Below are positions 1,044 through 23,464 of a stretch of 23,464 bases of DNA, piece by piece. Source of the DNA: Amoeboradix gromovi X-113 (lineage: Eukaryota; Fungi; Sanchytriomycota); contig JADGIF010000071.1 of NCBI GenBank assembly GCA_018985225.1, forward strand, positions 1 to 23,464. Reading direction: 5' to 3'. Each line of letters begins with the position of its first letter. The stretch's first letter is position 1. The notes below the pieces were generated by a model, which was given only the letters and a program-made list of their open reading frames with translations, was not told the DNA's origin and ran no database searches. Both the position numbers and the translations under genes were made by a program.

Positions 1044-2051
1044 ATGTCCCAAATGTTCACTCCATTTAAAATTGGTAACTCAGAACTAAAGCATAGAATC
1101 GTTCTTGCACCGCTAACAAGAATGAGAGCTCCAGGGCATATGCCAAATTCATTAATGGAAAAGTATTACTATCAGCGCAGTACAGACGGTGGGTTATTAA
1201 TTACTGAAGGCACATTTCCCAATGAGAGTGCTATAGCATTCAAAAATGTGCCTGGTATTTGGTCCACTGATCAAACCAGTGCTTGGAAGCCAATTGTACA
1301 GGCCGTTCATTCCAGAAAATCTACTTTTTATATGCAACTATGGCATACTGGTAGAGCGTCTATGTTTAAGCCAGTTAGCTGCACTGCTGCACCATTAAAG
1401 GCAAAAGGAAGCAAGGTTCCTCATGCTTTAACTCCTGCGCAGATTGAACAAACAGTTCTAGATTTTCAAAATTCGTCGGCAAATGCTAAAGAAGCAGGAT
1501 TTGACGGCGTAGAGATTCACGCAGCTAACGGATACTTGTTTCAACAATTTTTAGATAGTACAATTAATGCCAGAACGGATGAATATGGGGGAAGTTATGA
1601 GAACAGATGCAGATTCCTGCTAGAGACTGTTAAAGGCGCTTTGAAAGTGTTTCCAAAAGGAGTAGGTGTTAGGCTAAGTCCTTATAGTACATACAATGAT
1701 ACAAATGAGATGGATGAACAGTTATGGCTCCATGTGGTTAGAGAGTTGAACAAATTGGAATTATCTTATTTGCATTTAGTGGAACCCAGGGTGATCGGAG
1801 GAGGACAAGAGGTGGTTACTTCTAACTCACTAGACAGTTTAATTAAAATTAATAAATTGCCTTTGATTTTGGCAGGTGGATTTAACTCAACAAATTATGA
1901 ATCAAAGAAGAATGTAGCGATTGCTTTTGGTCGCTATTACATTAGCAACCCTACTCTAGTCCATAAGTTGAAGAATAATATTGAATTGACGAAATACGAT
2001 AGATCCACGTTTTACTCTTCTGGCGAAAAAGGATATACAACGTACACTTGA
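1044..2051 (+). CDS. Old Yellow Enzyme family NADH:flavin oxidoreductase (ene-reductase / OPR-like), 335 aa
   Basis: N-terminal LKHRIVLAPLTRMRA, GLLITEGT, QLWHTGR, catalytic GFDGVEIHAANGYLFQQFL (H-x-x-N-x-Y), RTDEYGGSYENRCRF, AFGRYYISNP and C-terminal TFY...GYT are all classical OYE motifs. Confidence 0.96.
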   Translation: MSQMFTPFKIGNSELKHRIVLAPLTRMRAPGHMPNSLMEKYYYQRSTDGGLLITEGTFPNESAIAFKNVPGIWSTDQTSAWKPIVQAVHSRKSTFYMQLWHTGRASMFKPVSCTAAPLKAKGSKVPHALTPAQIEQTVLDFQNSSANAKEAGFDGVEIHAANGYLFQQFLDSTINARTDEYGGSYENRCRFLLETVKGALKVFPKGVGVRLSPYSTYNDTNEMDEQLWLHVVRELNKLELSYLHLVEPRVIGGGQEVVTSNSLDSLIKINKLPLILAGGFNSTNYESKKNVAIAFGRYYISNPTLVHKLKNNIELTKYDRSTFYSSGEKGYTTYT

Positions 2052-2576
2052 TGTGAAGACATTAATAAAGTATTACTACAATCTTAGTGTCATAGTGTGT
2101 CTGGCGTTTAATCATTTCGTAATGCCTCTTCGTTTAATTTTGATTCCCCCTGTAAAGAACAAGCTTCTCTTTCATGTTCTCTATCTCCCACAGTCTTTGA
2201 TAGGATCAGATATTTTCGCTGCTCTTCTTACCTTTAATGCCTATCGATATGACCTACTATCAAGTTAACATGCCCGAAAGCATTAACATTTTATCAACTT
2301 AATCGACGAATCAGGAAACCTTGGACTTCGAAGCATATATTTTTACAACGCAACTGCAATTAGATTTGCCCAACAAAATAGAAGCGATTGGTTTAAATAA
2401 AAGTTTACTCTCAGTGATAAGAAAAATTAAAAGAATTTGTTTATTTTAGCACGGTAATTGCTTAGAAATTTTAGATCAGGGTAGAACTCTCTTTTTGTTG
2501 AACTGAAATCTAAGTAACATCGCCAAATGGCTTATGAACCCATGCTGATCAATATTCTCGAATGGTACATTCTCCA

Positions 2577-2648
2577 CCAATCGGCGTGATTCAGTAAATT
2601 CTAAGATTCTTAAGGGTTTCCAAAAGAATGTTCGCAATACTATAAAAG
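2577..2648 (+). promoter_or_regulatory. Putative Pol II core promoter (CCAAT box + TATA box)
   Basis: CCAATCGG at 2577 and TATAAAAG at 2641-2648, spaced ~60 bp apart, upstream of the small ORF whose first ATG is at 2733. Confidence 0.4.
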
Positions 2649-2732
2649 AAGTTCAGGTTATTAATTCAAAAAAAGGTGTTAGTTGAACAGTCGAGCTATT
2701 TGTTAGACAACATAGAGAGAGTAAGTTCTTCA

Positions 2733-3026
2733 ATGGCAGGCTCTGAGCGAGCATGGATGAGTTCCATCGTTGAAAATTCCTCTAGATATTCACGCAATTG
2801 GGAGAATGAGTCTAAAGCCCAAGTATATGCTGAAGAAAGTTCAAGCATGCCAAGTTTGAGTTCGTCAAGTCAGATCTATGCAGAATATGTCGCTCCTAGT
2901 GCGACTGTACCATCTGATGTTTATTCCTCATCCCTTTACAAAGCAGAACCACAGGCCACCGAGACATCTGCATCTTGGGTGATGCTGAAATTCAATATCA
3001 TGATACTGATTGCGCTGTTCTTGTAA
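2733..3026 (+). CDS. Small Ser/Glu-rich protein with C-terminal hydrophobic tail (tail-anchored or GPI-like); true start uncertain
   Basis: Frame open from 2676 (GTG); first ATG at 2733. Ser-rich low-complexity body ending ...SASWVMLKFNIMILIALFL. AATAAA at 3039-3044. No N-terminal signal peptide visible. Confidence 0.55.
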   Translation: MAGSERAWMSSIVENSSRYSRNWENESKAQVYAEESSSMPSLSSSSQIYAEYVAPSATVPSDVYSSSLYKAEPQATETSASWVMLKFNIMILIALFL

Positions 3027-3248
3027 AAACAATTAAAAAATAAATGAATACCACTGCAGTTTCTTAATTTCTCGCTTAAACTTCTAAGTATCATTGTACT
3101 GTTCTTGAAATCAAAAATAGTAGACTGTTAATAATTTTAGCTTAATTAAAGAATACCTTTATTTAACATTTCAAGTGGTAAATTATTGAAGTTTCATAGA
3201 CTGCAAAACAGAAGAGATCTTAAGCACAAGTTACATAACATTTTGTAT

Positions 3249-4874
3249 TTATTCCAGGTATTTAACCATGTATGGCCCTTCCAACTCATATCCCAACTTC
3301 CTGTAGTAGTCTCTGGTACCGACCCCAGATATAACTGCCAGCTTTTTGCTTTTATGCTCTTTCTTAGCTATTCTTTCTGCTGCCTCCATTAATAAGGTTC
3401 CAAACCCCTGATGCTGGAACTTTGTTGGATCTCTGTTATGAATTGGCACCACGCTGCCATAAACATGCAGCTCCCTAACAATACTCTGCGGAGTTCCATC
3501 CATAAGCAGCTCAGGCCTGAAAACAGTTTCGCTACATTTTCTTAAGCGTAATAACCCAATTAATATATCTTGTTGGGGATCTTCATAACTTAAAAAAGTC
3601 TCCCATCCTCCATTTGCCACGTAATCTCTGCGTATCAACTCGACGTGATTCGGTACAACCTTTGCATGTACTTCTTGTATTCCTACTTCTCTAGTTCTTA
3701 CATCTCTGCATTTGAGTTTCAAGTCCTTCATCCTTTGCAGTGCCAGCTCTCTGATATTTCCATGTTCTACACCACTGGTAACTAACGGCATAGGTATATC
3801 TCGTTGCACTCTGTATACTCTAACCCATGGTGGTACAACACTTAGTATTTTGGCCAGTAAATCAATCAAATCATTTGGCTTGTAATTTTTATATCTTCCT
3901 TGTCGCCATAATTCATAAATACCTGTACCCCTAATGACCAATAACGGATATATCTTTAGTCCGTCTGCTCTGAATTTAGGGCTATCAAAGAATTCATCAA
4001 ATTGGTCTAAATCTCTCTCCATTCCTACATTTGGTAGATCGGGCATCATGTGCGCCACAACTTTGTACCCAGCATCCTTTGAAAGCTGAAACGACTCACA
4101 TACGGCTTTAACTGTATGGCCTCGGTTAGTATCTCTAGCTACATCTTCGTAAACACTCTGAACTCCAATCTCTAATCTAGTGCAGCCATATTTGAGCATG
4201 TCGTTTATATGAGGTTTTAAACAATAATCAGGCCTGGTTTCTATTGTAATTCCTATACACTTAGTAACTGAATGTTCACTAAACATTACTGCTTCATTTA
4301 TATCCTGGGAAGTGTGACCTGACAAGGCATCGTGCAGCTTAGCAATAAAACCGTCTCTATAATCTTGAGGTAGACTCATAAATGTACCGCCCATCACTAT
4401 GTATTCTACTTTATCGCATTGGTGACCCAACTGCTCAAGTTGTTTTATTCTACCCCGCGCTTGTTCAAATGGATCATATCTAGCTCGAATAGCCCTCATG
4501 GAAGTAGGCTCAAACCCAGTATAGCTTTGAGTGCTATATTCAAAGTCGCTATCAGGGCCACCAGGACAATAACTGCACACATACTTTGTATACGCAATGT
4601 GTGGGCAACGATGGGGTTTAGCCATCACAGCAACGACAGCAATTCCACTAGCAGTTCTAATAGGTTTCGCCTTTAAACGAGGAAGCAGGCTTTTCTTATG
4701 AACTTCCGGAACGCAAGCTATTATATCAACTAATCGGGGTTGAGATGCTAATTTGTATTTTTTTGATATTTTACCTTTAAGAGCATTTAAGTTGCAAGAT
4801 TCGTCCTCTTTTAATTTTAACAGTATTTTCACTATTTCAGTACATGCCAACACGGTGACTTCTTTCTGATTCAT
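3249..4874 (-). CDS. ELP3: Elongator complex catalytic subunit Elp3 (radical SAM + GNAT tRNA acetyltransferase), 541 aa
   Basis: [15 protein letters not shown], radical-SAM CPH-x7-C-x2-CPGGPDSDF, [40 protein letters not shown] and [16 protein letters not shown] are Elp3 signature motifs. Confidence 0.99.
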
Positions 4875-5041
4875 TGCTCCTCCAAGTTAGATCCCAATAA
4901 AATTGGACAAATACTTTTTTGCACGGATATCGCCGCCGATTTTTGTAATCTCATCAAACGGCAGGTAAGACTTATAAAGACAATTTAAGTAAGACTTGAT
5001 ATCGCTAAATTAAAGTTTAGAAAAAACTATCTTATCAGCAT

Positions 5042-5555
5042 GGGACACCAAATATAAAAACTAGACCAACTCGTTTTTAAAGGTGTTCCATACGGAGGAA
5101 ATGCTATCATTAATAAAAGATCTTCTATTATACCAAGATTCTTTCATTAATTGTATTCCCCTCTTCAAAATAAAACTAGAAGACCCTACATCTCTTTCAA
5201 ATATATGAGGTCTTTGAGCATCTAAGCAAAAGGTGCATTTTCTTAGACGGTACTCTTTTCTAGAGTCATTTTGTAATGTTATACTAGCATCATTACTCTT
5301 ATCTATTCTAGTTTTTACAGAGTAATAGTGATATTTTATTTGAAATAAAGATTGGATGAAAGAGTAAGAGAATAGATCTACAGAATATTTATTTTTGAAA
5401 TTTCGATACAAAAAGTTATTTATTTTCCATTTATACTCGTCAACTCCGCAACTAGCTGAATGTCCACTCGTCTCTTAAATCCATAAAATAATAAAGCTGA
5501 AATAATGTTCCAAGTTGTCACAGAAAGGTAGTCCAGTTTTTATATTTGATGTCCC
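5042..5555 (-). mobile_element. Complete 514-bp non-autonomous TIR DNA element (copy B), candidate Fanzor-derived 'ghost' element
   Basis: Left TIR 5042-5071 is GGGACACCAAATATAAAAACTAGACCAACT. Right TIR 5526-5555 (reverse complement) is GGGACATCAAATATAAAAACTGGACTACCT; 26/30 match, 23/25 over the outer 25 nt. Direct repeat CAGCAT flanks both ends. Two further copies lie in the window. Confidence 0.95.
5061..5411 (-). pseudogene. Truncated ORF with TnpB/Fanzor-like C-terminus (second Zn-ribbon CxxC and RuvC-III-like motif)
   Basis: RKEYRLRKCTFC-LDAQRPH-IFERDVGSSSFILKRG aligns without gaps to the TnpB/Fanzor pattern CxxC-x(6-10)-[DN]RDxNAAxNILxxG. No ATG upstream of the motif (track start is TTG), and RuvC-I/II are absent. 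Codon-level conservation with copy C supports a coding origin. Confidence 0.6.
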
Positions 5556-5688
5556 CAGCATGTAATCTGCTCATATTTTACAGCATTTACTTAACTTTGT
5601 TTTAGTGTGTAGGATAGCTTATCAAAAATAGAATGGAGGGTGTAAAGACTGGTTACCTAAAGCTTATCATTAATTTTATTTATTGGTG

Positions 5689-7584
5689 TTACTCACTCTC
5701 TTCACTATCCTCATATCCACTTGTATCCTCTTCCTCGCTCTCCAAATCAATTTTCATGCCAAAGATCTCAAATTCCGATTCTAGATATTCCTTGATTTCA
5801 GTCCCATTTCCTTCCAGGTCGTAAGCACAATTAAAGATTTCCTGCACATTCTGTTGTATATATATCTTGTTTTTGTGTATTAACTCAGTCATTAGTTCGT
5901 ATTCTCCCTTGGCAAGTAGCAGTGAATAAAAACAGCCATTGTTATATTCTAGGTTAAATTGGTCTAGCATGGTATATATCCTGTTCTTAAGCTTGTAACC
6001 GCTTGTGTCATATGCGTAATACGGCATGCAGTCAGTTACATCAAGTGTAATAATGTTTTCCAGCTTACTGTCACTTCTGCTAATTGAACTTTTGTGTGGC
6101 GACCTTAGCAAGTCATCAAGCAATTCTACAAACTGGAGTTTAAAAACGTGTTTAATGTAGCATAATCTGGTTTCTTCACTATTATCCAGCATTGGAAATA
6201 TAAGTTCCATCATTTTTAGTAATTCCAGTCTTTTCAGACTACTTTTCTTTATATCAACCAGAACGGAGTAGTCGCAAGGTAGATAAAATAATTTTATACT
6301 CTTTGGTTTGACAATTACACTGTCTAGAAGCCTATTAAATAGCAGGACATCGCAGTTGTACATCAGCCTAGTTATCAGTAAATCTAGTATATCGTACTGT
6401 GGATATTGCAGATATAGGTCAATAGCAGTATCCAAGTCATTAATAACATAGTATTTCAATAGCTCTAGCCTAATTTCTACAATGTTCCATAATTTTAATG
6501 AAGCATCAACAACTCTGGTCATGAAGTAGTCAATAAGAGGCATTTCAGTTTGATTGCAATGAAAAGTGCTTAACGGATCAGTACGGTTTAAACTGGTGAA
6601 TGACTCTGTCTGACTAACAAAAGACTTTGAATAAAATTTAAAACAGTGAATCACATGATTAATATGCTCAGAATCGATCAATATCTGGAACTTCTTAATT
6701 ATTAAAGGATTATAGGCTGGCGAAGACTTCAGTATGTCTAAAGATAAAGATTCTATAGCTAATGGATGTGTGGAACGTGCCAACTGATTAAGTTTAAAGT
6801 AAATATTTCTTTTGTTGTACAGAATAGAAGAAGAAGAATAAAAGCAGGTTTTATCCTGGTCATTTAAATCCAAGCATATCATATCCACTAATTCAATTGG
6901 CATTAATTCTAACAGTGGGGAGAGACGATTTAATTCTAATGGCGTGCAAGACAGCAGACGATAAAATTGAAAATCATTCATAAATCTAGATTGATGGTAT
7001 AAAATGTACTCCTCTAAGCTGTTTTTCAGAGACTTGGATTTGTTCGATTTGCGAGAAATCTGCTTGTTAAAATTGTTGATAATGGGCAAAAGTGGATTAT
7101 AATTACTTTTTAACCATGGAGTAAGACATAATAACCCAGATAATGTGACTTTTAGGGAATGGTCGCACTTTCTGACTGATAGTTTGTTAAATAAACGAAG
7201 AAGAAAACTTGACTGAACAATGCGATGGTTGTTAGTAACAAAAGTATTGAATAACAGAGACAGATGGTACTCTAGTTGTGATACCTTGTAATTTAACAAA
7301 GTACGCTGTTGGACTTGTAGAGGAGTTAGTGCTTTGTACTGTTGCAGAAATATATGGAATGGACATGATTCAAATATATCATTAAGTAATGTGTGGGTGT
7401 AATGTGGGAGCAGAGGATCAAGGCAGTTGGGACAATTTAATTGCGATAAATGCAACAATAAATCCTGGCATTTTTTAACATTCAGAGAGACTCGTAGTTC
7501 TTGGTGGATCTGATCGATGGCATCTTCTAAGTTATTCTGACAGAATTCTAACTGCTCCTGACTATCTAGAGAGAAGATGTCCAT
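5689..7584 (-). CDS. Hypothetical ~631-aa protein with internal F-box-like motif and acidic C-terminal tail
   Basis: Long uninterrupted ORF; first ATG at 7584 (track start 7611 is TTG). LLELMPIELVDMICLDLNDQDKTCFYSSSSILY (~6802-6915) fits the F-box pattern L-x-LP-x-E-l-x-x-I-x-x-x-L-x-x-x-D. C-terminus is ESEEEDTSGYEDSEESE. Confidence 0.75.
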   Translation of the reverse strand: MDIFSLDSQEQLEFCQNNLEDAIDQIHQELRVSLNVKKCQDLLLHLSQLNCPNCLDPLLPHYTHTLLNDIFESCPFHIFLQQYKALTPLQVQQRTLLNYKVSQLEYHLSLLFNTFVTNNHRIVQSSFLLRLFNKLSVRKCDHSLKVTLSGLLCLTPWLKSNYNPLLPIINNFNKQISRKSNKSKSLKNSLEEYILYHQSRFMNDFQFYRLLSCTPLELNRLSPLLELMPIELVDMICLDLNDQDKTCFYSSSSILYNKRNIYFKLNQLARSTHPLAIESLSLDILKSSPAYNPLIIKKFQILIDSEHINHVIHCFKFYSKSFVSQTESFTSLNRTDPLSTFHCNQTEMPLIDYFMTRVVDASLKLWNIVEIRLELLKYYVINDLDTAIDLYLQYPQYDILDLLITRLMYNCDVLLFNRLLDSVIVKPKSIKLFYLPCDYSVLVDIKKSSLKRLELLKMMELIFPMLDNSEETRLCYIKHVFKLQFVELLDDLLRSPHKSSISRSDSKLENIITLDVTDCMPYYAYDTSGYKLKNRIYTMLDQFNLEYNNGCFYSLLLAKGEYELMTELIHKNKIYIQQNVQEIFNCAYDLEGNGTEIKEYLESEFEIFGMKIDLESEEEDTSGYEDSEESE

Positions 7585-8196
7585 GTGTCTGTAAGTGGTT
7601 TCACTCCTCAAAATTGACTAGCAGTTGAACACTCAATATCGCGATTGATTGAATTCTGTCACTACAGTGGATCTACTATTAAAACTTTTGTAATAGAATA
7701 AACGTAATAATTTGTTTTGCTTATCTGCGAGAAATGTCCCCAAATAAATCTCATCCAGAATATCTCCAATCTTAAGACATCATCGAACAATGTAGAATCA
7801 ACTGTTTCCACTCAGAATTAGCCTTGAAATGAGATAATCGTAAAAACCGATTAGTGAAATCTTACGCAGCATTTGTTGCTCAATTTATACAAGGGTGGAT
7901 CTTCAATAAAATACAACTAAGAGACATGATGCGCAAATTGACATATGCAAGTGCATAGATTCTGCGATTAGCAACATATATCTGAGTCTATGCATCACTA
8001 TTAAATTATGCCTTAGAGTAATGGAACGATAGCAGCCAACGGAACGATTGGCTTTGCCAGTTTTTCTGTGAAAGAACTGGATTTGATAATAAATCAGGAT
8101 ATTTAATCAGAGAAGTTAAGATATGCAATGAGAAGGTATAAATTTTGCCTTGGGTTTCTATCCCGATCAACTAATACAATTTGTAGATTTTAAAAA

Positions 8197-8704: not shown

Positions 8705-9922
8705 TTATTGCATCTGAAAAGTAGTGGCCAGTATAAATAATGTGTATCCTATAATGTTTTCATTTGCCGCTGAGAAATCATATCCAGGCTGCGCCTCACC
8801 AGAATAGTAATCTGTACTTTGAGTTTCTACTGGCGGTGAGTATGGCTCGCTAACAGGCTCTACTGATGGTAATGGTTCACTAATGTGTTCCACTATGGGT
8901 TCAGAAGCAGGTTCACCTACTGGCTCACTTATAGGCTCTACAGCAGGTTTAGCGACCGGTTCATCTTCTGGTTCAACACAAGGCTCCTCTTCTGGTTCAT
9001 ACTCTGGTTCTACAAAAGGCTCCTGTTCTGGTTCTACAGAGGGCTCCTGTTCTGGTTCATACTCTGGTTCTACAAAAGGCTCCTGCTCCGGCTCCTGTTC
9101 TGGTTCCACAAAAGGCTCATCTTCTGGCTCCTGTTCTGGTTCATACTCTGGCTCCTGTTCTGGTTCATACTCTGGTTCTACAAAAGGCTCCTGCTCTGGT
9201 TCATCTTCTGGTTCAACACAAGGCTCCTCTTCTGGTTCATACTCTGGTTCCACAAAAGGCTCATCTTCTGGCTCCTGTTCTGGTTCATACTCTGGCTCCT
9301 GCTCTGGCTCCTGCTCTGGTTCATACTCTGGTTCCACAAAAGGCTCCTGCTCTGGTTCATACTCTGGTTCTACAAAAGGCTCCTGCTCTGGTTCATACTC
9401 TGGTTCTACAAAAGGCTCCTGCTCTGGTTCATACTCTGGTTCCACAAAAGGCTCTTCAGTACTATAAGGAATTTCACTAGTTGCTTCTAAAGATTCTGTA
9501 GCTCCAGGATAGTCTCCATTGGGTATGTATGTATTTTCTGGACTCTCTTCTAACGAAGTATCTGTCTGGGTAGCATATGAATTTTCTGGACTCTCTTCTG
9601 TCTGGGTAGGATATGAATTAGCTGGACTCTCTTCTAACGAAGTATCTGTCTGGGTAGGATATGAATTAGCTGGACTAACAGAATCCGTTGCTTCTGCTGG
9701 ATAGCAATTGTTTGGTAAGAGCTCATTGTGATCACCATGTAAACCGCCAGATATTTCTGGCAGTCCAAAACATGTTTCCGTAGATTCGGATGTTTGGGTT
9801 GGCAAATTACTTTCAGATGCATATTCTGGCAATCCGTCATAAGCCTCATCAACTGATTCCGGTTTTGCCAATGGACTTGCATATCCTATCATTGATGTTA
9901 TAAAAACCATTTGCATTTTCAT
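8705..9922 (-). CDS. Secreted, probably GPI-anchored, acidic Glu/Pro/Tyr repeat surface or cell-wall protein, 405 aa
   Basis: Hydrophobic N-terminus [17 protein letters not shown]; Ser/Thr/Glu-rich region; EP-x-x repeat block; small-residue site (FSAAN) followed by hydrophobic C-terminus [13 protein letters not shown]. Confidence 0.85.
8958..9454 (-). repeat. Coding minisatellite: 12-bp units (EP-x-x) arranged in 36-bp ([12 protein letters not shown]) and higher-order repeats
   Basis: Recurrent plus-strand TCTGGTTCATACTCTGGTTC(T/C)ACAAAAGGCTCCTG(C/T). Confidence 0.97.
9530..9676 (-). repeat. Coding tandem repeat of 48/36 bp ([16 protein letters not shown]-like, ~3 copies)
   Basis: [16 protein letters not shown] / [12 protein letters not shown] / [16 protein letters not shown] / SPENTY in the protein. 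Confidence 0.9.
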
Positions 9923-10125
9923 TATCTTGCATCTGGAAATTCAAGCTATTTAAAAGATCTTCTTCTGTCTATTTTACTTGCACCAGTCATATATCTTGTT
10001 TCTGTGTTCAACCTCCAATCAACTGAAGTTGTTGATGACTATTAGGTCTGTAGTATATTACTAGGATTCTTTGACGAAATCATGGATTGTAAGAAATCAT
10101 GCATAAAATAAATTTAATTTATTTG

Positions 10126-13100
10126 TTACTTTAAATCACTGTTACAAACAATTCCCGTGCCTTTTACAGTTAATTGATCGCTCCATTTTAAGTTCAGCAA
10201 ACATATTAATTCATGTCTCTTGCTCGTCCTATAAACTGGTACTTGTCCACTTACTGTTTGGTTTGTCGCTGTGATGTGCAAAACTGGCATTACACTAGTC
10301 AATTGTTTTCCAGTGAGCTCCACAAACTGATTTAACCTTCTGTCATACTGACCACATTCTATAGTTAGTCCCCCTATATAAAGCCCTTCATTGGGTGCAT
10401 GTTCTAGGTTCTTAGCTACCTCACAGGTTATCGTCGTGCTGTCCAATGCCCACTTGTTATTTCTACTCATTTCTTGCTGAATAGTTGTTAACAACGACTG
10501 CGGCTGAAATATATAAGGCATATGTATTATTGCTAGTTTGTTCTGCATCCAGTTAATATAGTGCACCTGACGCTGTTGCAATTCTATAAAAAACAAAGAA
10601 TACGACTGGCACGGTATCTGTTGCCAGTCTTTTGGAAGTACTTGGCATAGTATGTTGTCCATCAATTGCTGTGTCTGGGTAGTCATCAAGCTACTTCCAT
10701 CTAACACCTTTATCAGATTGCTTAGATCTTTGTCTATTCTGGTGATTAAGGAATTGAAGACTTGCAATTCATGCTGTATAAACAACACGAACGCTTTGCT
10801 AAACTTCTTTGCTTCGTATTTAATCAGCATAGGTAACTTTGTTCTACTTTGATCAATCAGCTGTCTCAGTACCATTTCTCTATCAACTAGTACAGATTCT
10901 TGCGGCTGTATGTTGGTTATCGACTCCAATGTGCCCGTAACATAATTAGTATGAAAGATTATGTTGTTGTTACCGCTCAATCCATACTGGTTTGGTAGAT
11001 CCTGATCCCCTAGAATTTGTAGTTGGTTGATATACAAGTCAACCGTCTTGAACCCATGGATTTGCACTCCTAGTATCATTTTGCTTTTTATCGTTAGATC
11101 ATTAAATAGCAGCATGGTCAATGTCTGTATAAACTTACGATCCATGTTGTTAGTTACGCGTCCACCGTAATGTACATCACCGACCATATACCTTATTGTT
11201 TGCCATGGAATAGGTGATTTAGGATCCAACTGGTCAAATATCATTTGAATACACATTATTGAGGCTAAAAGATCTGCTTGATTAAATTCATACGGTATGA
11301 TCCATCCTATTGACCCATACTTGCGGCGCTCTTGTACTATGGTGTGGAACAGACACAAAATGTAAATCAGCAATGGGAATTCCTTGTAATTGGCATCTAG
11401 CTGCTCATTAGTTAACCAGCTGTATGTCCTCATCAATCCGGCTTTTAATCCTTGAGGTGGCTCATTCGTAAACTTGATACTAATTTGTAACAAATTGATT
11501 GGGAATTTAGCATTCTGCTCAGTGGTTATCCACAACCTAAACTGGTCGTTACAATCATCTAGTAACCCCATGAGTTCGTCCATAAATGGTAACCCCAAGT
11601 GACAGTTTTGTAGAAGCACCCACCCGCCTTGCAGCATTGAAAGTTTGATGTGTTTACGGGCATGCACCTCTTGCCCCTGTCCCATACTAATCACTACCAG
11701 GGGAATCTTTAGCTGCTTGCTCAGGCACTCGATATCACTAGTAGGGTCACTGCCACTGGTTAACAATGCAATCATTGGAGTCTTCACACTACTTTCAGAC
11801 AACAGTTCTTGTAAATTTAGCAGTTGAGGTTGAACAAATTGATTTCCCAGTGTCGAGCTGATGTATTTTCGACTCATTCCCAGAACTTTATCAATACAAA
11901 AGCATCTAATTAGTAACATGTGATGGAACGCACTCAATTCCATATTTGGCGTATCTAATAACTCAGGCTCGTCGTGCTCATACCATGATTTCCATTGTTT
12001 CTCATTGTTTTCAATGTTGTTAACTAGTTCATGAAATGGCAGCAATTGTCTAATGGCAGTTAAATTCAACCAAATAGAATCACTTATCCAAGAATAAGGT
12101 TTTTTTGTAGTGTCTACGCTGAGTTGTCCTGCCCTAATAAACAAATTGAATTCTTGGATTGATATCTTGTTTCTGTTAAGGTCAATTTTAAGACTAAGCA
12201 ACAAACTAAACATTAGTTTATGTTTTTCATACAATCCGCGTGTGAAATAACTGAACAATCTAAAAGTCAAGTAATCTAAAATATTTTCTATTCTCTTTTG
12301 CACAATTACATCCACTTTGGATCTATCCATTGACTCGTCAAACAACTGCAGAAACTGACCCAGACTGGTTTGGTACATGTTGCAAACATTTGCAAAATCG
12401 CTTATTAAAAAGTATATTATGGATCCTCTTATAGCTATAACTCTGTACTCATCTCTAGCATGTGTAATCTTCTTATTGGTGTCAGCAGCTACAATTAATT
12501 TATCGTTGACTTCGACAGAAGTCTTTTTAGTGTTCTCTAGTACCACAACTAGCGATTCATCATCCACAAGACTACCTTTAGTGCTACTAAGTCTACTCAA
12601 TAAATTGTCCTCTAAATCTTTGATTTTCTTTTTATTCATGCTGATTTCTTCCAACAGCTTTACTCTTTCAATCTCTAGCTCCTTCTTCTCACGTAAAATA
12701 ACTCTGCCAAGCAATTGTTCTTCCAATCCTCGTTGGGTTACTGTGAAATCCACTACACTCAGTTTTGCAAATACTTCGGGTGTGTAGCTAGGGTTAGGCA
12801 GTTTAGTAGTCATGTATAGTCTAAATCCACTGGTGTAGTCCAATTCTTTTTCACCAAACATAACTTTAAATCCCTTTCCACTTTTTAGCAGATTACGCTC
12901 TAAAATGTTGTCTAGACTTGGATCTACATATTCCTCGACGTCCTCTATCAATAATGGTCTACCCAAGTTAACAGCATCTTCAACGTTATTTCTAAAATAC
13001 TTGTTACTAAAATTAGTTATAATTAAGTTCTTACCCTCCTTTTTACTAATCCATTGTCTGGCTTGCGATTGTGGATCTATTATCAATGGGTATCTACTTC

Positions 13101-16100
13101 CTTCGGTTGTTATTATTCCATTCTGCACGCTCAACTCATCATTAGGTAATCCATTCAACTGCCACTCATCTAAAGTGTTCTGCTCTAACATGAATGTCTG
13201 TAAATTAAAATCGCTTGAAGGTATATTGTACTCGTTTAACTTTATTTTCCAACTGCACATCATTTTGTGCCTATAATCAAAGTTGAATGGTCCGCAGTAA
13301 CTTAGAAATGCGCTAGCTATTATTACGTCACCTACCAGTTTACCTATTTGTCGTTCTAAATCCTTTGCGGTGGTAGTCCATCGCTCTTTTTCACCTTGTA
13401 ATCCATTTATTAACATGGTTGCTATCCGCATCTTTTTTCTACATAAATCTGCTACATCCTGTAATTGTTGCTTTTGGTCAATTGCATCATCATACTTCTT
13501 TTTTAATTTACTAAGTTCGTGTTCTTTTTCATCGAGTATTGCTTGCGCTTTTGACAAGTCATACATTGCTGCACTATATTTGTGCTCTGCAACTATCAAG
13601 TTACTCTTTAATGGTATTACCTTTTTGTTTATATGGTAGTAAGTACACATCGCCCGTACCCAGCAGGCTAACCCAGCTACGTCCGCGCTCACTTTCTTAG
13701 CTCCCTCTACTGTAAAATCGGCCATTTCTATATATGGTTCAACCAGCTCAACTGTCTCTTCAGTCATCTCGTCTTTAGGAAACTTCAACAGTGATTGTAG
13801 AAAATCAGGTGTAGACATCAATTTCATGCTCTCCTGCCAGCTAGGTTTACAACAAGGTTTTTCAGGGTCTTGCTGCATTGTATCCAATTTTTTTTGTTGT
13901 AATAACAGCACGCCATCCATTATTCTCATGATTAAATGCGGTGGTTTAGCTAATTTCCGAACAGCGCTAATATGTGACGGTTGTATACTGTTAAGTGCGT
14001 TGGCTGCCTCCTCCAATGCAGGCTTTGCAGCTTCTAGTTCCGCTTCAGCTATACTTTTATCCTTTTTAATTATATCAGCAATTTCTTGGCAACTCAACTT
14101 AACTTTCAAAACCTCATCTTTAACTACTTGAGCTTGATGAGTTGACTCTGTCACCTCTTGCAATACTAGGTCTGCCTCCTTGCTTGCAACAAGTAGTTCC
14201 TTTTCTTTAAATGTTAGCTCTTGTTGTAAAATAGCTACACTAGATGCTGCTTCATTCAGCTTGCTCAACCCAACATTCATTCGTTCTGCCATGCTTCCTA
14301 CATGGTTAAGTTTTTTGCTGTACATCTTTATAAACGAGTTTAAGAAGCTCAGGTAACTTTTTGGGGTCAAGTACACTTTGCGCCTAAATGTGCTCAAATA
14401 TGAATCACACATTAATTGTATATCTTGATGTACCATTGCTATGAACCCAATCGCACTATTTTTCACCTCTTCTGTACATTTCAATGCCACTGGACTTAAA
14501 AATTTACTGCTTACTGCCATTAACGCTGCCTGTGGCCATTTGTTGAACCAATCTAATGTACAGCCACTAATTAGTCCAGGAAACTTTAAACTTCTCTGTC
14601 TGAATTTGTCCCCAACTGGTGAGAAGCACAGAATTACATGCAAATTCTTCATTACTCTCTCTATAAAAAAAGTATACAAGTTCTCATTAGTATCGACGAT
14701 AATTGGACTTTCCTTTTTCATATGCATCCTAACATCATTGCATATGGTTAATATTTCATCTTTTAAGAACAATCCTGGTATTTCTCCATTAGTTAAGATA
14801 TTGTTAATTATGCCAAGATATGTTTCATCCTTAACGTCGTTGTCGGTAAAGATAAATGTTGCAGACTCTCCATTCACTCCACAATATCTGTACATAATCT
14901 TCAAATCATCCATAAAATTAGTGATATTGTAGTTTTTGGTGATAGTAAGCTGAAATACTTTGGAATCGCATATAAATGCGCTTAGCTTTGTTAGTGACTG
15001 CTTACCACTCCCACCTACACCAACCAGTACCATTGATCCTCGAGGAGTTCTTAGTTGCCTGCATATTCTAAGTATATGATCAATAGCATCATCAAAAAGT
15101 ACCAGATCCAATTTGTTACTTTTAACACTCTCATTATATGATGATTGAAAATTTAGCAACCGTTGCTTTATTAAATCTATGTCTTCACATTGTTCGTAAT
15201 ACTTATAATCTTCATTTTCAGTGTCTTCTGGCGGTAACCTCATAAAGTCACAAAATCTCACAACGGCAGATGGATTTTGCACCTGAACTTGTTGTTTAAA
15301 GTATGAAACATCTTTTTCAGTCACCAACCTATCGCTCAGTACTCTGCTACACTCATGGGTCATGAGGTTGTTGTACTCTGCAACAGTTTTTAATCCAGAT
15401 GGTTTAGAGATGGTCATACCTTGAACTATTCTTGATAAATCTCTTAAGTTAAATATATAATGAAACTTATCCGGAGTGGGCAGCAACTTATTTTTTGTAG
15501 ACTGCCAGATATTTCTAATTTTATAAATACTCGAGCTCGCTTGTTGTTCTATATCTTTTGCAAACCCTCTAGTAGTACTGAAATACCCGTTTAATATTAG
15601 TCCGAAAATTTTATCAATTGATTGAGAGCTTGGCAAAGCGCAATTAATTATACAGAATTGCCTCTTTAGTCTGGCAGGTACATCATTCCTACCACCTCCA
15701 GGATGCATCATTGCTGCTAGATATTTGAAATCTATAACACTGGTCCATTCACCTGGTCTGTCTAAGGAATACATTCCGCCCTGTTCCATCAGCTGCCTTA
15801 CAATCTCACTTGTTGGCTGATCTCCCCAGTTATTAATTTCAGGCATATTAACATCATCAATAAACATCATCATTTTCTTACCTCCTGGAGGACCATAAGT
15901 CGTTCCCAATCTCTTTTCAACAATACTTTCTATACTTCTTTGGAATACATTCGGGCTAGTTGTTGAACTAAAAGCGATTGTCTTGCTGGTAGTTTGCTCA
16001 TTTGAACAAGACTGTATGTACTTACTGATTGTCATAGTTTTAGCACTACCCGGTTCACCTATAAGCATAACAGGCATGTTTTGATCAGTTAGTCGCTGAA

Positions 16101-19100
16101 TTAGATATTGGGTCCTAATATTATCAATGTTAGGTATAAATAATGTCGAGTAATCAAAGTCACTGTTTGGAAACTCCCAATCAGGTACAATAAACTGCCA
16201 TTCTTGCCATTCAAAATTGTTTAAATAATAATCGTATCCATTTGATTTCGAAGGAAGTAACAGAAACGTGAATTTATCAACAATAAACAAGTAAAGCTTT
16301 TCCCTCTCCAAGAGCTCTAATAAACTGCCGAATCCCCATGTGATAGCAAATACAAATGCCTTGTTAATATGCTCTGGATCCGTCTTGTCATTAGGCAAGA
16401 TAGAATCGAGCATTTTACTTGTAAATATAAAATAGCTAATATCTGGTATTGTCATTCTTGGATGTAACTCATTCTTAATGTATTCCAAAAGTGTATTAAA
16501 AGTCTTGTTAAATAAGTCAGCTAGAACAAAAGACTGCTTCAATTTTAACTTCAGCCAGGACTGTAATAGTGAGTCCCATGTCAAAGTACTCTGCCCTACA
16601 TATATCATGCCACATCTGCTAACAGTTGCCGGACTTGCGTTTCTCAAGGAATCTACTTCAAATACCAGTTTGGCACCTGGTGACATGATTAGTCTATCTC
16701 CGTTTGCCAACGTCAGTGTTTTATTATCATCTAGGACACTGTTTAAGTTCTCTATCCATACCGCATCCACCGGACCGTCTAATATAATCCAAATATTCTC
16801 TCCTTTTCTTTTTAAGGTTTTGCGCCATATTGCACTAAATATCCCGTCTGTCCAGTCATTTGTACTCGAATCCAATCTACCAAACATCTGGTAGTCCAAA
16901 ATAGCTTTGGGGTTCATTTTAACATCTTTATGGATGTAATTTGTATTCGTAAAAGCATTTAAGAGCGTCTGGATAATCTTGCTCTTTCCACTACCCGTAG
17001 GACCAAGCATCATTATTCCATGCCGCACTTTTGCGGTCTCATATAGCTGTATTACTTTTAATGTAAAATCATTGCTAGCAGTGATGTTCAACTCACCAAT
17101 TGCCTTAAATATAGCCCCTTCCATCTCCGGATAAGTTCCCTTTGGTGAGCTTACACTAGGAAATAAATCGTTAATCAGACCGCTGAAAACCAGTTCGTCT
17201 TCATCTACTAATTTACTCATGTTCATATCTCGCAAGACCCTCATCATTATGGTTTCCTCACTATCCATTGGGTTACTTCTTTTTACACTTCCACAAGTCC
17301 TCAACACGCTTAAGATATTTCTTAATCCAAAATCATAGTGAACCTGCTTACTCAGCTGCTCTTCACAGAGTTTGTATAATACAAAAAATTTTCTAGCCAA
17401 CGTGCTGTTATTTATAAATCCGCAGCCAGCCAATTTTACTTTAATTATAATTTGCCTGTCAGGTACCATCATAGCAACATATCTAAAATACACTTTCAGA
17501 TTTTCCGGTAGTTCTACTCTACCAGCATATCCTGGGTTCATTGTTATAAAAAATCCAACTTCCGGATTTAGTTCTACTAACTCCCCATCAGTAAAAATGA
17601 AATTACTTTTTTTTTCTTTTTTTGCATTTAACACGCTCGCTATCTGCTGTGCTGCCACACTCAGTACTGGTAACTCGATTCTGTTGAACTCATCGAAACA
17701 ACCCCAACATCCGCTTTGTGCCAGACCTTTGTAAATTCTTCCTAAACCCCTATAATCCATTTGGTCTGAACAATTGAATACAACAACCCATTTGCCTAAA
17801 GCCTTCCCCATATCTTTTGTTGTTTCGGTTTTCCCAGTTCCTGCTGGCCCCGCAGGACTTCCGCCTAAGTTCAAACCTATTGCTTGGGCTAACGTACAGT
17901 AGCATCTATCCGTTAATGGAGTTATCACTAGCCTGTCTGTACAGCCTAAGTATTCGTTCTGGTAAACAAAATCGAAGTTTGTTATGCTTACAATACACTT
18001 TTCTTCATCTTCCTTGTAATAAAATCTACTCTGTTTTAGCCACTCAAAATCATCTATTCTATTGACATTCAGCTTTGTTAATTCCTCGCTAACATCTCTG
18101 TGATGAACTTGTATAGTTATTAATGTTTCATATTTAATTCTATCCATTTTACTCAAATCCTTCGTTGTGGTACTTATTAGTGTATTCAGTATAATTGTTA
18201 TTCTTGCTAGGGCGTTCTGCATCGATTTTTTATCTTTGCTTGCTATTGCTTCTTCCATAATCATTGTCCATGATATTTGCAAGCATAAAAGTCCAACTTG
18301 TGCTGGGTATTTCTCAATTACATTTATCAAATCCATCTCGCTCATATCTGTTACTGCTGCCTTTATTACGAGTTGAATAGATTTCTTAACACATTCCAAT
18401 AACTGTCCAATCCATATTTCTACATTCCCAGTGGCCAATAATGGCTTGTAAAACACTACCTGCTCGCCTTCCATGCTTTCCATTCCCATGATCTTGTCAT
18501 GCTCTTTAACATCAAATTGCACACTATTCACGTTATCAAACAAGCTCTTTAAGTGGGGTATAATTGTATGAGTATCACTAGCTTGCCCTAGTATCTCCAG
18601 AAGCGATGGGTCACTCACAAAATAGAATCTAGGAAATATCCTTCTTTTGCTTTCTAAATATCCTACCAGAGACTTTTGACATTGCTCCAACTGTTCCATC
18701 ATTATTGGTAAGCATTCCTTCACGGTTTCATTGTCAACACATAGCGGAATGATTAATGGCGATTCATTTACAATGCCCATGACCCTGCACCATGTTTTGT
18801 CTACATTTTGAAACTTTTTAGCTTCTTTGGGCATCTGTTTAGCTATATCTCCACCTCCAAATACTGCTTCTAGGTAAATCCACAGATTCATGACACTTAG
18901 CCAGTTATCCAATACCTCACTAGTTATAGTAAGATACCTAATCCATTTCTGTATGTCTTCTTTAAATGGTGTGTTATATCTGTTACTAAATAACGATGCC
19001 AGCGTCATTTGACTATCTTCTAAGCTAGTTATAATCTCAGCAGTTGTAGATGGCTGCAATATTAGTAGTCCTCTTTGTTTAAACATTGAACTACAAAAGC

Positions 19101-22100
19101 ACTTGCTTGTCCATTCTAATACCACTGCTTGCAACTTACTGTCAATGTCATGTTCCTTTAGAGCTCCAGTGCATATGTCTTCCAAATCGTCTTTTAATAG
19201 TAGTGTACTGCTATTTATAAAGACGCCGATTGGTGAGTCGTTTTCAAAATCACACTGAACCTTGGTAATTGCACATATTCCATTGTAATGGCGGGGTAAC
19301 ATCTTCGGATTATTCATTTGTTCTAATAATGGTATCAGATCTACCAAATCGTCCACCAATGTCTTCAGTCCTAGATACGCTTGTTTTTCTTTCAATGACT
19401 TTGGAATCTTTTTAAATTTGCTCTGCAAATCCGAAACTAGTTCATTCATGAGCTTAAAGTCGCATTTGATCCATGTCAATTTCCTCAACTCACTGTAATA
19501 ATCTATACATTCCTTATATACTCCATATAACAAATATAGCAATTTCAATTCCTTTCTTATGCTGTTTTCAGAACTTGTATCAACCGGGACTGTATTAAAT
19601 AACATGGCACCTGCGTCCAGCCTCTTCCTTTGTCTCTCAATGTTATCTGAATATTTTATAAACATTTGCAATTTCTCTATTGCCTCTAACGGGTCTATAT
19701 TTTCAGCCTGGGGCCCGTTTAACAAATAGTCTTGTTGAAATTTATCACTTTCTACCTCCAGCTCTAATTGCATCAATTCAAATTTACTTTTAAACATTGA
19801 TTCTTTGGCATACAAACTTGATTGCACTAAATGACTTGTATTGGTTAGTTTATCAAAGTCGTATCTTATTGAGTCAGCTAGATCGTTAGTATTCTTGTTT
19901 ATTGCCAGATTGAATTTGGTTAAAATTGTAAATCCTTCTTCAATTGGCTTTATCTTCATTTCAATTGTCGGTTTCTCTAGGTAGAAATCTGTTAGACCAT
20001 CTACAATTGATTTAACATCCTCAAAATCATCTATATTACTATTCAGCTTAGCACTATACTGACCTAATTGATCAACCAAATTGTTAACATTGTTGTTTAA
20101 TAGTTCATTTAGTCTACATCCTATTAAGGATTGAAAGCCAAGCAATTTGTTAATCATCAACTTCTTTAACTCTATTGTACTCTGTATAAACGGTCCACTT
20201 GAGTAGTGATCACTTATTTGCTCTACAGAGTGCAAGTCTATTCTTGTTCGTATCAACACAGATTCCAGCTCATGCACGGTGGTTTCCTTATATTTCAACA
20301 ACTCATCCGTAGTGTTTAGTAAGATAATATATAAATACTCCTCTAATACTTTAAATGTCGGTACTATCAGAGATTTCCAATTCTTACTATATATACTCAT
20401 ACTTGATAAAAACCTTTGTACTTCCTTGTTTGCTATAAGTACTGACCAATCTTTAAATGCTGTTGTTTTAGCTAAAGGATTCTTGAAGCTACTTAACTCT
20501 ACTAGTACCAAGGTACAAATATCAATGTAATCAGATTGAACCGTATTCAAATTGGGTTTGATAATTAGTTCATTGCAATCAACATCAAAATCAATGTTGA
20601 TGCATCCGCAATCACTATTTAAATATACTTTAACATCTTCCATGTTTTGACGAATGCTTATAACTAATGAATCTAAAACTATAGATTTCAAATGGCTTAA
20701 GATTCTATCAAATAAAATTAAGAGCAAATCATCATTTTCTAGGTTTAATTGTTTCAATAACTGTTCAAGTGCATTCTTGATCAAGTAAGCTACGTACTCT
20801 GTTTGTAGTAGTAAATCTTCCACTATTTTGACACATTTGTTCATTCGGATTGCCATAGCATGCCTATACTCTCTTAATACAATTCTTTCAGTCTGAACAT
20901 CTATGTATATTATTTTACTTAAAGAGTTTTGTAATGGCTCTAATACGTTGCTCACTATGTCATTTACATTTTGTTTTAGTCCTCCTATCGCACACATGTA
21001 ATAATAGATCTCGTTCGTGTATTTTACTATGCTGAAAGAGTTCCATGTTATACTAATCAGACCTAATGCCAACTTGTTATCAATCCATTTGGCAATGAAT
21101 GAATAAAAGTCTTTTAATGGAGTCCAATGATTTAGTGTCAGAGAGTTGCGATCTGCTACTACACATTTTAATTTTTCGATTACACTTTCAATAGTAATCC
21201 ATCGTTTTGTTAATTTAAACAATACGTTTGGTATCTCAATCCCAACTGATTTCATATACTCGCATTCAATGATATAATTATGCAGGTTAACATCAAGATT
21301 TAAGTAAAAAGTGTTTCGTTCATCAATCACAAACAGCGAAGCATCTAAACTACTTAAACAAAATTCAATCTGACTTTGCCATGCCTCTAAAACCTTACTC
21401 TCAATTACAATCAATGCAGTCATTAGTCTATTGTACTGTTTCATTGCAATTGTGTAATCAGGATGACAGTTAAAATCCTTGTATGTTAATATCAGTTCCA
21501 ATGGCTGCTGTATCTTTATGATCATACTTTTAACCCATTTTAGTTTATTAACCGTATATGAACCATTTGATGTGTGCAAATCATCCTTATATATATCTAC
21601 ATGATGTTTAACATTATTTAACACGCCAACTGCGAATCGATGAAACATCAAATCATAATAGTCATTAAAATCCAGGTTGAAATAGTCTTTTATTGCCTTT
21701 AACTGTTCCATTTTGACTAAAACAAACTTGAAGTCTTCATAGTCATTGACAAATATAGTTAATTGAGTCAAAGTATCGTGCATTAAATTAGAAGCTTGCA
21801 AGTTGAGATAAGCCATATCTAAGTCAAAGTCTGTTTTCTTATAGTCCAGCACATTGGTTTGCTTAAGCATTAGCATTGATTCTAGCTGCATGTATTTCTT
21901 TACTGTTGGACCAAAGCCATCGATATGGACATTGTTGAAAGTGCTGAGAGTTGCCAAAATACAGCAAAATTCAACAACCCTGTTAAGTCTTTTGGTAAAT
22001 GCTTCTAATCTTCCAAATATATACATTTCACTGAAATCAAATTTAGGTAGTTCATCTTGTAAGTCTAACTTTTTTTTGACGGACAAATAGGCATTTGAAT

Positions 22101-23064
22101 AGTTTTTATAAATTTCTAAAATCCTCGGAAGATCTTGGCAATATACCTTGCTATCTTTGAAGTAATTGAATTGTAATTTCTTTGTTAAAATTTTTTTGAT
22201 TGAAACTAAGACTTCGTTGGTTACTTTAATTAGAAGGCTAGTAATACGATCTGGAGTGCAAAAATATTTGCTCGATATGTAAATGACATGAATTATGTTC
22301 ATAATAACTGGAATTGCCTGATTTAAAGATTCATAACTCAACTGGCCCAGTAACTGAGAATGTTTGTCAAGAGGTGCCAAAAAAACCACATTGTCTTTAG
22401 CTTCTGCAAAATTAAATTTCATTTTAGCCTCGATTTCAACTAAGTGTTCATAAACAGGGCTTACTTCATCATAAAGATGCTGTTTGATTTCAATGTAACC
22501 AGGGTTACACAACTGTAGTTTAATTGCTTGAAATCTGTGTTCGCGGTGCTGCCAATATATTAACTCGGCGCGAGGACCACTTATCTCTTCATCTTGTCGC
22601 TGTAATTGATCACTTTCAAGCATTATTAACTCCAATTCATGACACCATCCCTCCACTTTGCGCTCCAGCTCTTTTAAGGGTAAACTAATCACATCGGTGG
22701 TTTCCAAATTAAACTCGGACCTTTCTATCATGTTTTCTAAATACTTTCCACTCTTTTCTAATTGCAACTTTACCTGTTCGTTACCAACCAATTGACCATA
22801 GAGTTTGTAGATGGCCAAAGCAGCTTCAAATTGATTTCCATGTAGAACCCCCACTGTCAATTCACTATCTTTGATGACATAGATGTTTGTTTGATTTGCC
22901 ACAAACTGTTTGCTTACCACTAGTTCATTATTTATGAAAGTTATAAAGCACAATTTCTCAACTCCATCAAAGAATTGCAATATCTTTTGGGGTAAATCAG
23001 TCTTAACAGATTGCCCATGTACTAACAAGATTCTATTTGAAATTAATTGCCAACGCGAATCCAT
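10126..23064 (-). CDS. Axonemal dynein heavy chain, outer-arm gamma type (DNAH5/DNAH8, Chlamydomonas ODA2-like), 4312 aa, single exon
   Basis: P-loops GPAGTGKT (AAA1), GPTGSGKS (AAA2), GEPGSAKT (AAA3), GVGGSGKQS (AAA4). [28 protein letters not shown] and [23 protein letters not shown].WGDQ are characteristic of the DNAH5/8 clade. Stalk MTBD region [16 protein letters not shown] is present. Confidence 0.95.
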   Translation of the reverse strand: [4312 protein letters not shown]

Positions 23065-23387: not shown

Positions 23388-23464
23388 GGGACACCAAATA
23401 TAAAAACTAGACTAACTCGTTTTTATAGGAGGTGCTCCATACGGAGGATATGCTGTCATTAATA
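23388..23464 (-). mobile_element. Partial copy (C) of the TIR element, cut by the window edge; 3' end relative to the internal ORF
   Basis: GGGACACCAAATATAAAAACTAGACTAACTCG... aligns to 5042-5115 with 5 substitutions and one 3-nt indel. Confidence 0.93.

Follow-up and report, generated by a model that had tools for sequence, protein, structure and literature searches.

Does the 514-bp element at positions 5042–5555 of the window (the whole 23,464-nt stretch of Amoeboradix gromovi DNA analysed here) descend from a transposon that carried a Fanzor-type RNA-guided nuclease and, if so, what moves it and what might its retained end still do? This ghost (non-autonomous) element is read on the minus strand, with its left end at 5555 and its right end at 5042, and is bounded, as a sequence-only reading of this DNA had described, by terminal inverted repeats (TIRs) of 30 nt each that are 87% complementary: a left TIR at 5526–5555, which begins GGGACA, and a right TIR at 5042–5071. 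The zinc-ribbon-like peptide named in that reading is likewise present on the minus strand, with CTFC at 5226–5237 (the second zinc-finger CxxC) and ERD at 5190–5198 (RuvC-III Asp, 5190–5192), and its frame ends at a TAG (5061–5063) within the right TIR. The 116-residue open reading frame is a chimera, in which ~5061–5307 (minus strand) is the C-terminal remnant of a Fanzor1 gene and the remainder is left-end DNA. The copy as a whole joins the left 220 bp to the right 265 bp of a longer element, and its left-end non-coding segment (5335–5555, minus strand) is common to the 1,660-bp member L061. RuvC-I, RuvC-II and the first CxxC have all been deleted; with neither RuvC-I nor RuvC-II, the window copy can encode no nuclease.

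An Elp3-like gene (3249–4874, minus strand) starts 167 bp from the right end of the element, and a gene on the other side (5689–7611, minus strand) encodes a 640-residue protein to which motif inspection assigned no function. An old-yellow-enzyme-like gene (1044–2051, plus strand) and a gene for a secreted-looking protein with EPE repeats (8705–9922, minus strand) were, like the Elp3-like gene, named from motifs. An unbroken dynein heavy chain of 4,312 residues occupies 10126–23064 (minus strand), its motor region best matching axonemal outer-arm DNAH5/gamma chains (1,729 bits); the genome paper describes sanchytrids as without axonemal dyneins (PMC8371127).

Longer members of the family were traced through an N-terminal scrap that persists in the longer miniature elements. 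The decayed copy L059 has SDG, GIDPG, FWEDG and E-x-x-TS-x-x-CxxC, and continues into the sequence of the window peptide. L060, which is truncated by the start of its contig, retains 436 open codons ending at a stop at the right TIR, and the window remnant is 63% identical to it over 65 residues. Its catalytic and structural residues include D125 within IDPG (124–127), FWGDG (300–304), E340 and D394. The published Fanzor/TnpB signature, D-X(125,275)-[TS][TS]-XX-C4 zinc finger-X(5,50)-RD (PMC3627910), is matched in L060 by D125, TS 343–344 (217 residues apart), C347, C350, C379, C382 and RD 393–394. The rearranged Fanzor active site, with DPG in RuvC-I, the canonical RuvC-II Glu replaced by Gly/Pro and an alternative Glu ~45 residues further on (PMC10530073, PMC10711439), is also present in L060, as IDPG, FWGDG and E340. 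The context is that of a eukaryotic transposon and not of IS607: L061 has two TIRs and a 4-bp target site duplication (TSD), AAAT, the environmental member L072 has both TIRs, and another, L066, has the TSD ATGT preceded by C. The window element therefore descends from a Fanzor1 gene. The sequence-only reading had proposed that the element arose by internal deletion from a TIR transposon bearing a Fanzor. It had also predicted the RuvC-I Asp, the RuvC-II Glu and the E-x-x-TS-x-x-CxxC motif for longer members sharing these TIRs, and on both points it was right. It further expected a full-length, divergent Fanzor in this genome or lineage; intact relatives of 585–642 residues occur in metagenomes, and in the A. 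gromovi assembly a piece-by-piece search of broken genes found no complete uninterrupted family gene.

The family protein belongs to a small, divergent clade within Fanzor1. When 1.84 billion representative proteins were searched exhaustively, 16 hits emerged, comprising 13 close relatives and three ordinary Fanzor1-like proteins; the 13 form one clade (support 99/99, in a small tree with long branches and an untested root). A profile built from the clade only reached GtFz1 at E 0.0047, and at 3.7e-15 once three bridging Fanzor1 sequences had been added. The model of the 616-residue relative P0003 matches SpuFz1, PpFz1 and GtFz1 over the full length (TM 0.46–0.54, E 4e-8 to 2e-6), with SpuFz1 the best fold match (TM 0.52, E 4e-8) and Fanzor1 proteins the only matches at E below 1e-3. 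The model of L060 is poor (pLDDT 46), yet Fanzor1 still ranked first in the fold search, so that the anticipated similarity to Fanzor profiles and structures was seen with the clade profile and with both models. In a Pfam search the parent protein scored 20.9 bits for the zinc ribbon, below the cut-off of 26.3; Pfam cut-offs thus miss this rare Fanzor1 branch. All long alignment rows contain the SDG/TDG motif of the WED domain, the TDG-type feature that characterises Fanzor1 together with an enlarged REC and the overall fold. The RuvC-III context differs: RDxNAAxNI is a common motif that lies outside the published Fanzor1 definition, and in its place the clade reads RDxxSxxxI, keeping the catalytic Asp and replacing both conserved Asn residues, with KD where others have RD in the A. 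gromovi subfamily P0009. Since the defining features of Fanzor1 are present, this replacement marks a divergent Fanzor1 clade, and the suggestion of a new eukaryotic OMEGA family falls; Fanzor1 in Sola elements (PMC3627910) and Fanzor1 ghost loci (PMC10432273) had, moreover, already been described.

The intact relatives are intronless and come from environmental assemblies. Both TIRs of L072 (protein P0007, 642 residues) are near-identical to those of the A. gromovi family, and L069 and L070 have one family-type TIR each. L066 and L108 lie in gene-dense contigs of 27% GC that, from their gene content, look like giant-virus DNA. Protein and TIR-pattern scans of low sensitivity gave no match in JGI metagenomes or IMG/VR. 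In the virus-like L066 contig a U-box gene (9363–10322, minus strand) adjoins the Fanzor, and the opening 100 residues of its product are similar to the N-terminal part of an A. gromovi transposase (30% identity, E 2e-10); in L072 the intact element is inserted directly after a histone H3-like gene (1–150). A. gromovi also has a second, distant subfamily (L093:1142–1960, L094 and L099; G000:C574, C1001 and C364) with ends GAG..CTC and KD for RD. In the tree it falls together with P0003 (support 86/90), whose contig is virus-like, a hint that exchange between fungus and giant viruses may have occurred.

The window element belongs to a real, very high-copy family of Fanzor1 ghosts in Sola-type elements, and the clade concerned is both rare and divergent. 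Two further family ends lie in the window itself, a left end at 1–140 cut by the contig start and a right end at 23388–23464 cut by the contig end (both minus strand), and a 24-nt TIR core (≤2 mismatches) has 1,355 matches in the 10.5-Mb assembly of this sanchytrid fungus, a parasite of algae, and none for the reversed control, in agreement with the claim that the element is multicopy. Because both ends of an element can match the core, these correspond to ~700 to 1,300 elements. The 44 complete copies read are 303–726 bp long with varied internal deletions; most are ~96% identical to their consensus, and the right end has no extra conservation. The published assembly was made from short reads of amplified DNA, and its paper makes no mention of transposons (PMC8371127); the literature searched gave no link between Fanzors and sanchytrids. 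Many family TIRs lie at contig ends, where the short-read assembly breaks at these repeats, and the family DNA recurs in the independent Logan assembly of these reads, whose contigs break within the element. Intact Fanzor genes may thus be hidden, and the chances that an active one survives in A. gromovi seem to us about even.

A direct repeat does flank the window copy, as the sequence-only reading held, in the form of a 6-bp CAGCAT at 5036–5041 and 5556–5561. It is atypical: this is the only 6-bp duplication among the 44 copies, which rules out 6 bp as the family rule, and the family TSD is 4 bp, ANNT, perfect in 11 copies against 2.8 expected from random pairing (p 8e-5). The other 33 have non-identical 4-bp flanks, though both follow ANNT. 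At ~4% divergence about three quarters of TSDs should still be perfect, so most copies have non-matching flanks, which may reflect mis-joins in the short-read assembly or real exchange between copies; an empty-site test found no informative nested copy. Insertion without a TSD is not favoured, given the excess of perfect 4-mers over chance and the clean TSD of a nested transposase element. When the 44 copies are oriented, the left flank reads (A)CANNT, with C at position −5 in 42, A in 43 and T in 38 copies (most commonly ACAWAT), while the right flank begins with A in 42 copies and has the mirror-image G at +5 in 22 (left–right asymmetry, p 2e-6). A conserved CA likewise precedes the left inverted repeat of SpuFz1, whose TAM is CATA (PMC10432273), so CANNT is the predicted TAM of the family Fanzor, a putative TAM- and guide-dependent nuclease. 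A bias of the transposase is an alternative source of the CANNT flank.

The likely mover is encoded elsewhere in the genome. A DDD-type transposase (DUF7869) has 56 genome matches, with open frames of 579–586 residues. Its motifs DNCxGQNKN and GHTKxxxD are those of what we take to be a Sola1-like member of the Sola superfamily, and an AWWT/AWDT target is a hallmark of Sola1. These motifs differ from those of the Sola2 proteins of dictyostelids (PMC3627910). The transposase elements end in TIRs of the same type as the miniature copies, one being identical to a miniature right TIR over 25 nt. One transposase element has inserted into a family remnant at C-AATT-G, the consensus target of the miniature copies, and is flanked there by a perfect AATT TSD. 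A 4-bp AT-rich TSD fits Sola elements, and with TIRs and target common to both groups the mover is most likely this putative Sola-type transposase. Very probably, then, Sola-type transposases act on the element in trans, inserting it at C-ANNT-(G) with a 4-bp duplication; no single element with both transposase and Fanzor was seen in the A. gromovi assembly. The transposase elements L046, L045 and L063 are several kilobases long, with internal TIR-like motifs and extra open reading frames without assigned function.

The right end may in addition encode a guide RNA. The last 125 nt of the element fold into two domains with z −3.5, a value reached by none of 200 shuffles, and the left end (5431–5555, plus strand) shows no such fold (z +1.1). 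Since the right-end hairpins form on the complementary strand too (z −5.4), folding alone gives neither strand nor proof of RNA. The upstream hairpin, predicted at 5095–5163 (minus strand) in the window copy, varies from 35 to 70 nt between subfamilies with its base kept, and is absent from the three most distant members tested. In the predicted terminal stem (5039–5092, minus strand) a motif 50–64 nt inside the element, here TATGG at 5088–5092, pairs with the last bases of the element and the first of the TSD, the right TIR supplying the 3′ strand. Elements ending CCC have TATGG (nine elements) and those ending CTC have TATGAG (five elements), a G-C to A-U change across the clade that represents few independent events. 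The motif lies in two different codon frames, so that this co-variation indicates a constraint acting on the nucleotide sequence outside the TIR. RNAalifold gives a weak consensus (−3.96 kcal/mol, two pairs with two-sided change), and a search of Rfam with the right-end candidate gave no match. As the stop codon lies inside the TIR, any scaffold overlaps the last 30–40 codons; overlap of a scaffold with the coding end is a TnpB-like arrangement. Fanzor1 scaffolds are predicted to include the TIR and TSD (PMC10711439), and ghost omegaRNAs are functional with SpuFz1 (PMC10432273). On balance, we lean towards an omegaRNA formed by these 125 nt, with transcription running on into the right flank and a scaffold that shares sequence with the coding 3′ end, TIR and TSD; the right flank at 5021–5041 (minus strand) would then comprise a TSD copy and, by the known Fanzor1 layout, a predicted guide segment.

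Taken as a whole, 5042–5555 is likely to have arisen by deletion from a Sola-type cut-and-paste transposon that carried Fanzor1, to be mobilised in trans and to bear a candidate omegaRNA. Under this scheme a Sola-type transposase would excise ghost copies and reinsert them at C-ANNT-(G), and the right-end RNA, with its flank-derived guide, would direct a full-length Fanzor supplied in trans to cut the empty donor site left by excision, recognised by a TAM of about CANNT followed by the guide-matching flank. Repair with an occupied copy as template would put the element back at the cut site, and such cutting and restoration would account for the derivatives examined all keeping the right end. 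The scheme would be superfluous if the element were a plain MITE, with the Fanzor1 descent real and the 3′ piece a passenger, the transposase requiring the subterminal DNA, no guide RNA being used and the Fanzor extinct in this genome. Such an account, which we hold to be unlikely, fits the absence of extra conservation at the right end of copies ~96% identical to their consensus and the fact that every longer member is broken or cut by a contig end, and the difference between the two ends means that the target asymmetry could be transposase-derived. Set against it are the terminal stem, which changes in step with the element end and is without a left-end counterpart, the 436 open codons of L060 with all catalytic motifs, and the breakage of the assembly at the very repeats that could hide intact genes.

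Two further explanations concern the protein itself. Replacement of both Asn residues of RDxNAAxN throughout the clade, and KD for RD in P0009, would suit an RNA-guided binder of DNA that does not cut, like inactive TnpB or Cas12m, with ghost RNAs directing binding or silencing; all three acidic catalytic positions are, however, kept in L060, P0003, P0006 and P0007, and GtFz1 cuts despite a non-canonical third residue (PMC11423790), leaving this very unlikely. That the element is an assembly artefact, or its peptide an unrelated zinc-knuckle tail, is scarcely credible: Pfam has no match to the 116-residue frame, nor do PDB sequences to L060 as a single sequence, but the Fanzor motifs and the profile and fold matches speak otherwise, the same ends recur in unrelated metagenomes and in Logan's assembly the family DNA is found again, and full-length relatives refute the unrelated tail. 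A bolder extension of the favoured scheme, which strikes us as improbable, is that this Fanzor1 clade is active, its RuvC-III remodelled and its omegaRNA TnpB-like in overlapping its own coding end, and that the approximately thousand ghosts serve it as a library of guides spread across the genome at one per 10 kb. If so, successive rounds of cleavage and inter-copy repair would shuffle the flanks, explaining the mismatched TSDs.

The family is distinct from the Fanzor2/IS607-type family of A. gromovi, which is also TnpB-derived with hundreds of cut-down copies (560 zinc-ribbon candidates genome-wide in a PF07282 search), but has no TIRs, a canonical RDxxAAxNI and a resolvase partner, and lies outside the Fanzor1 clade in the tree; the ghost family, by its TIRs, falls outside Fanzor2/IS607, and the TIR-less family was rejected as its parent. 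A 130-bp TIR-less remnant of that other family lies at ~335–465 of the window, and in L029 (G000:C542) an open 672-codon Fanzor2 frame overlaps an IS607-type resolvase frame (1476–3491 and 2770–3399, minus strand).

Among solved structures GtFz1 of Guillardia theta is the best sequence-profile match; it has Asn as its third catalytic residue (PMC11423790), whereas the present clade keeps Asp and alters the residues after it. The dictyostelid Sola2-Fanzor1 elements DFa-1 to -3 and PPa-1, -4 and -5 similarly carry Fanzor1 in a Sola transposon with a 4-bp AT-rich TSD. They are, however, 10–15 kb long with multi-exon Fanzors of 1,000–1,800 residues and 12–22-bp TIRs (PMC3627910), in contrast to the ~2-kb elements, intronless proteins of 585–642 residues and 30-nt TIRs of the present clade. 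Spu-1 of Spizellomyces punctatus, another zoosporic fungus, resembles the A. gromovi family in having a lone Fanzor1 (SpuFz1) between 30-nt inverted repeats, ~0.5-kb ghosts and a conserved CA directly upstream of the left inverted repeat, and has 19 full genes, 134 ghosts, a scaffold between stop codon and inverted repeat, and no transposase found (PMC10432273). The A. gromovi family differs in its ~700–1,300 ghosts in 10.5 Mb, its stop codon within the TIR, its 4-bp TSD and a Fanzor only ~11% identical to SpuFz1, and its genome holds a matching Sola-type transposase. This rare Fanzor1 branch is directly testable, since it offers intact natural members together with a predicted TAM and a predicted scaffold. 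Unlike Spu-1, it combines in one small genome a likely transposase, remnants of the nuclease and around a thousand ghosts, so that the question of why Fanzors ride eukaryotic transposons becomes testable as well.
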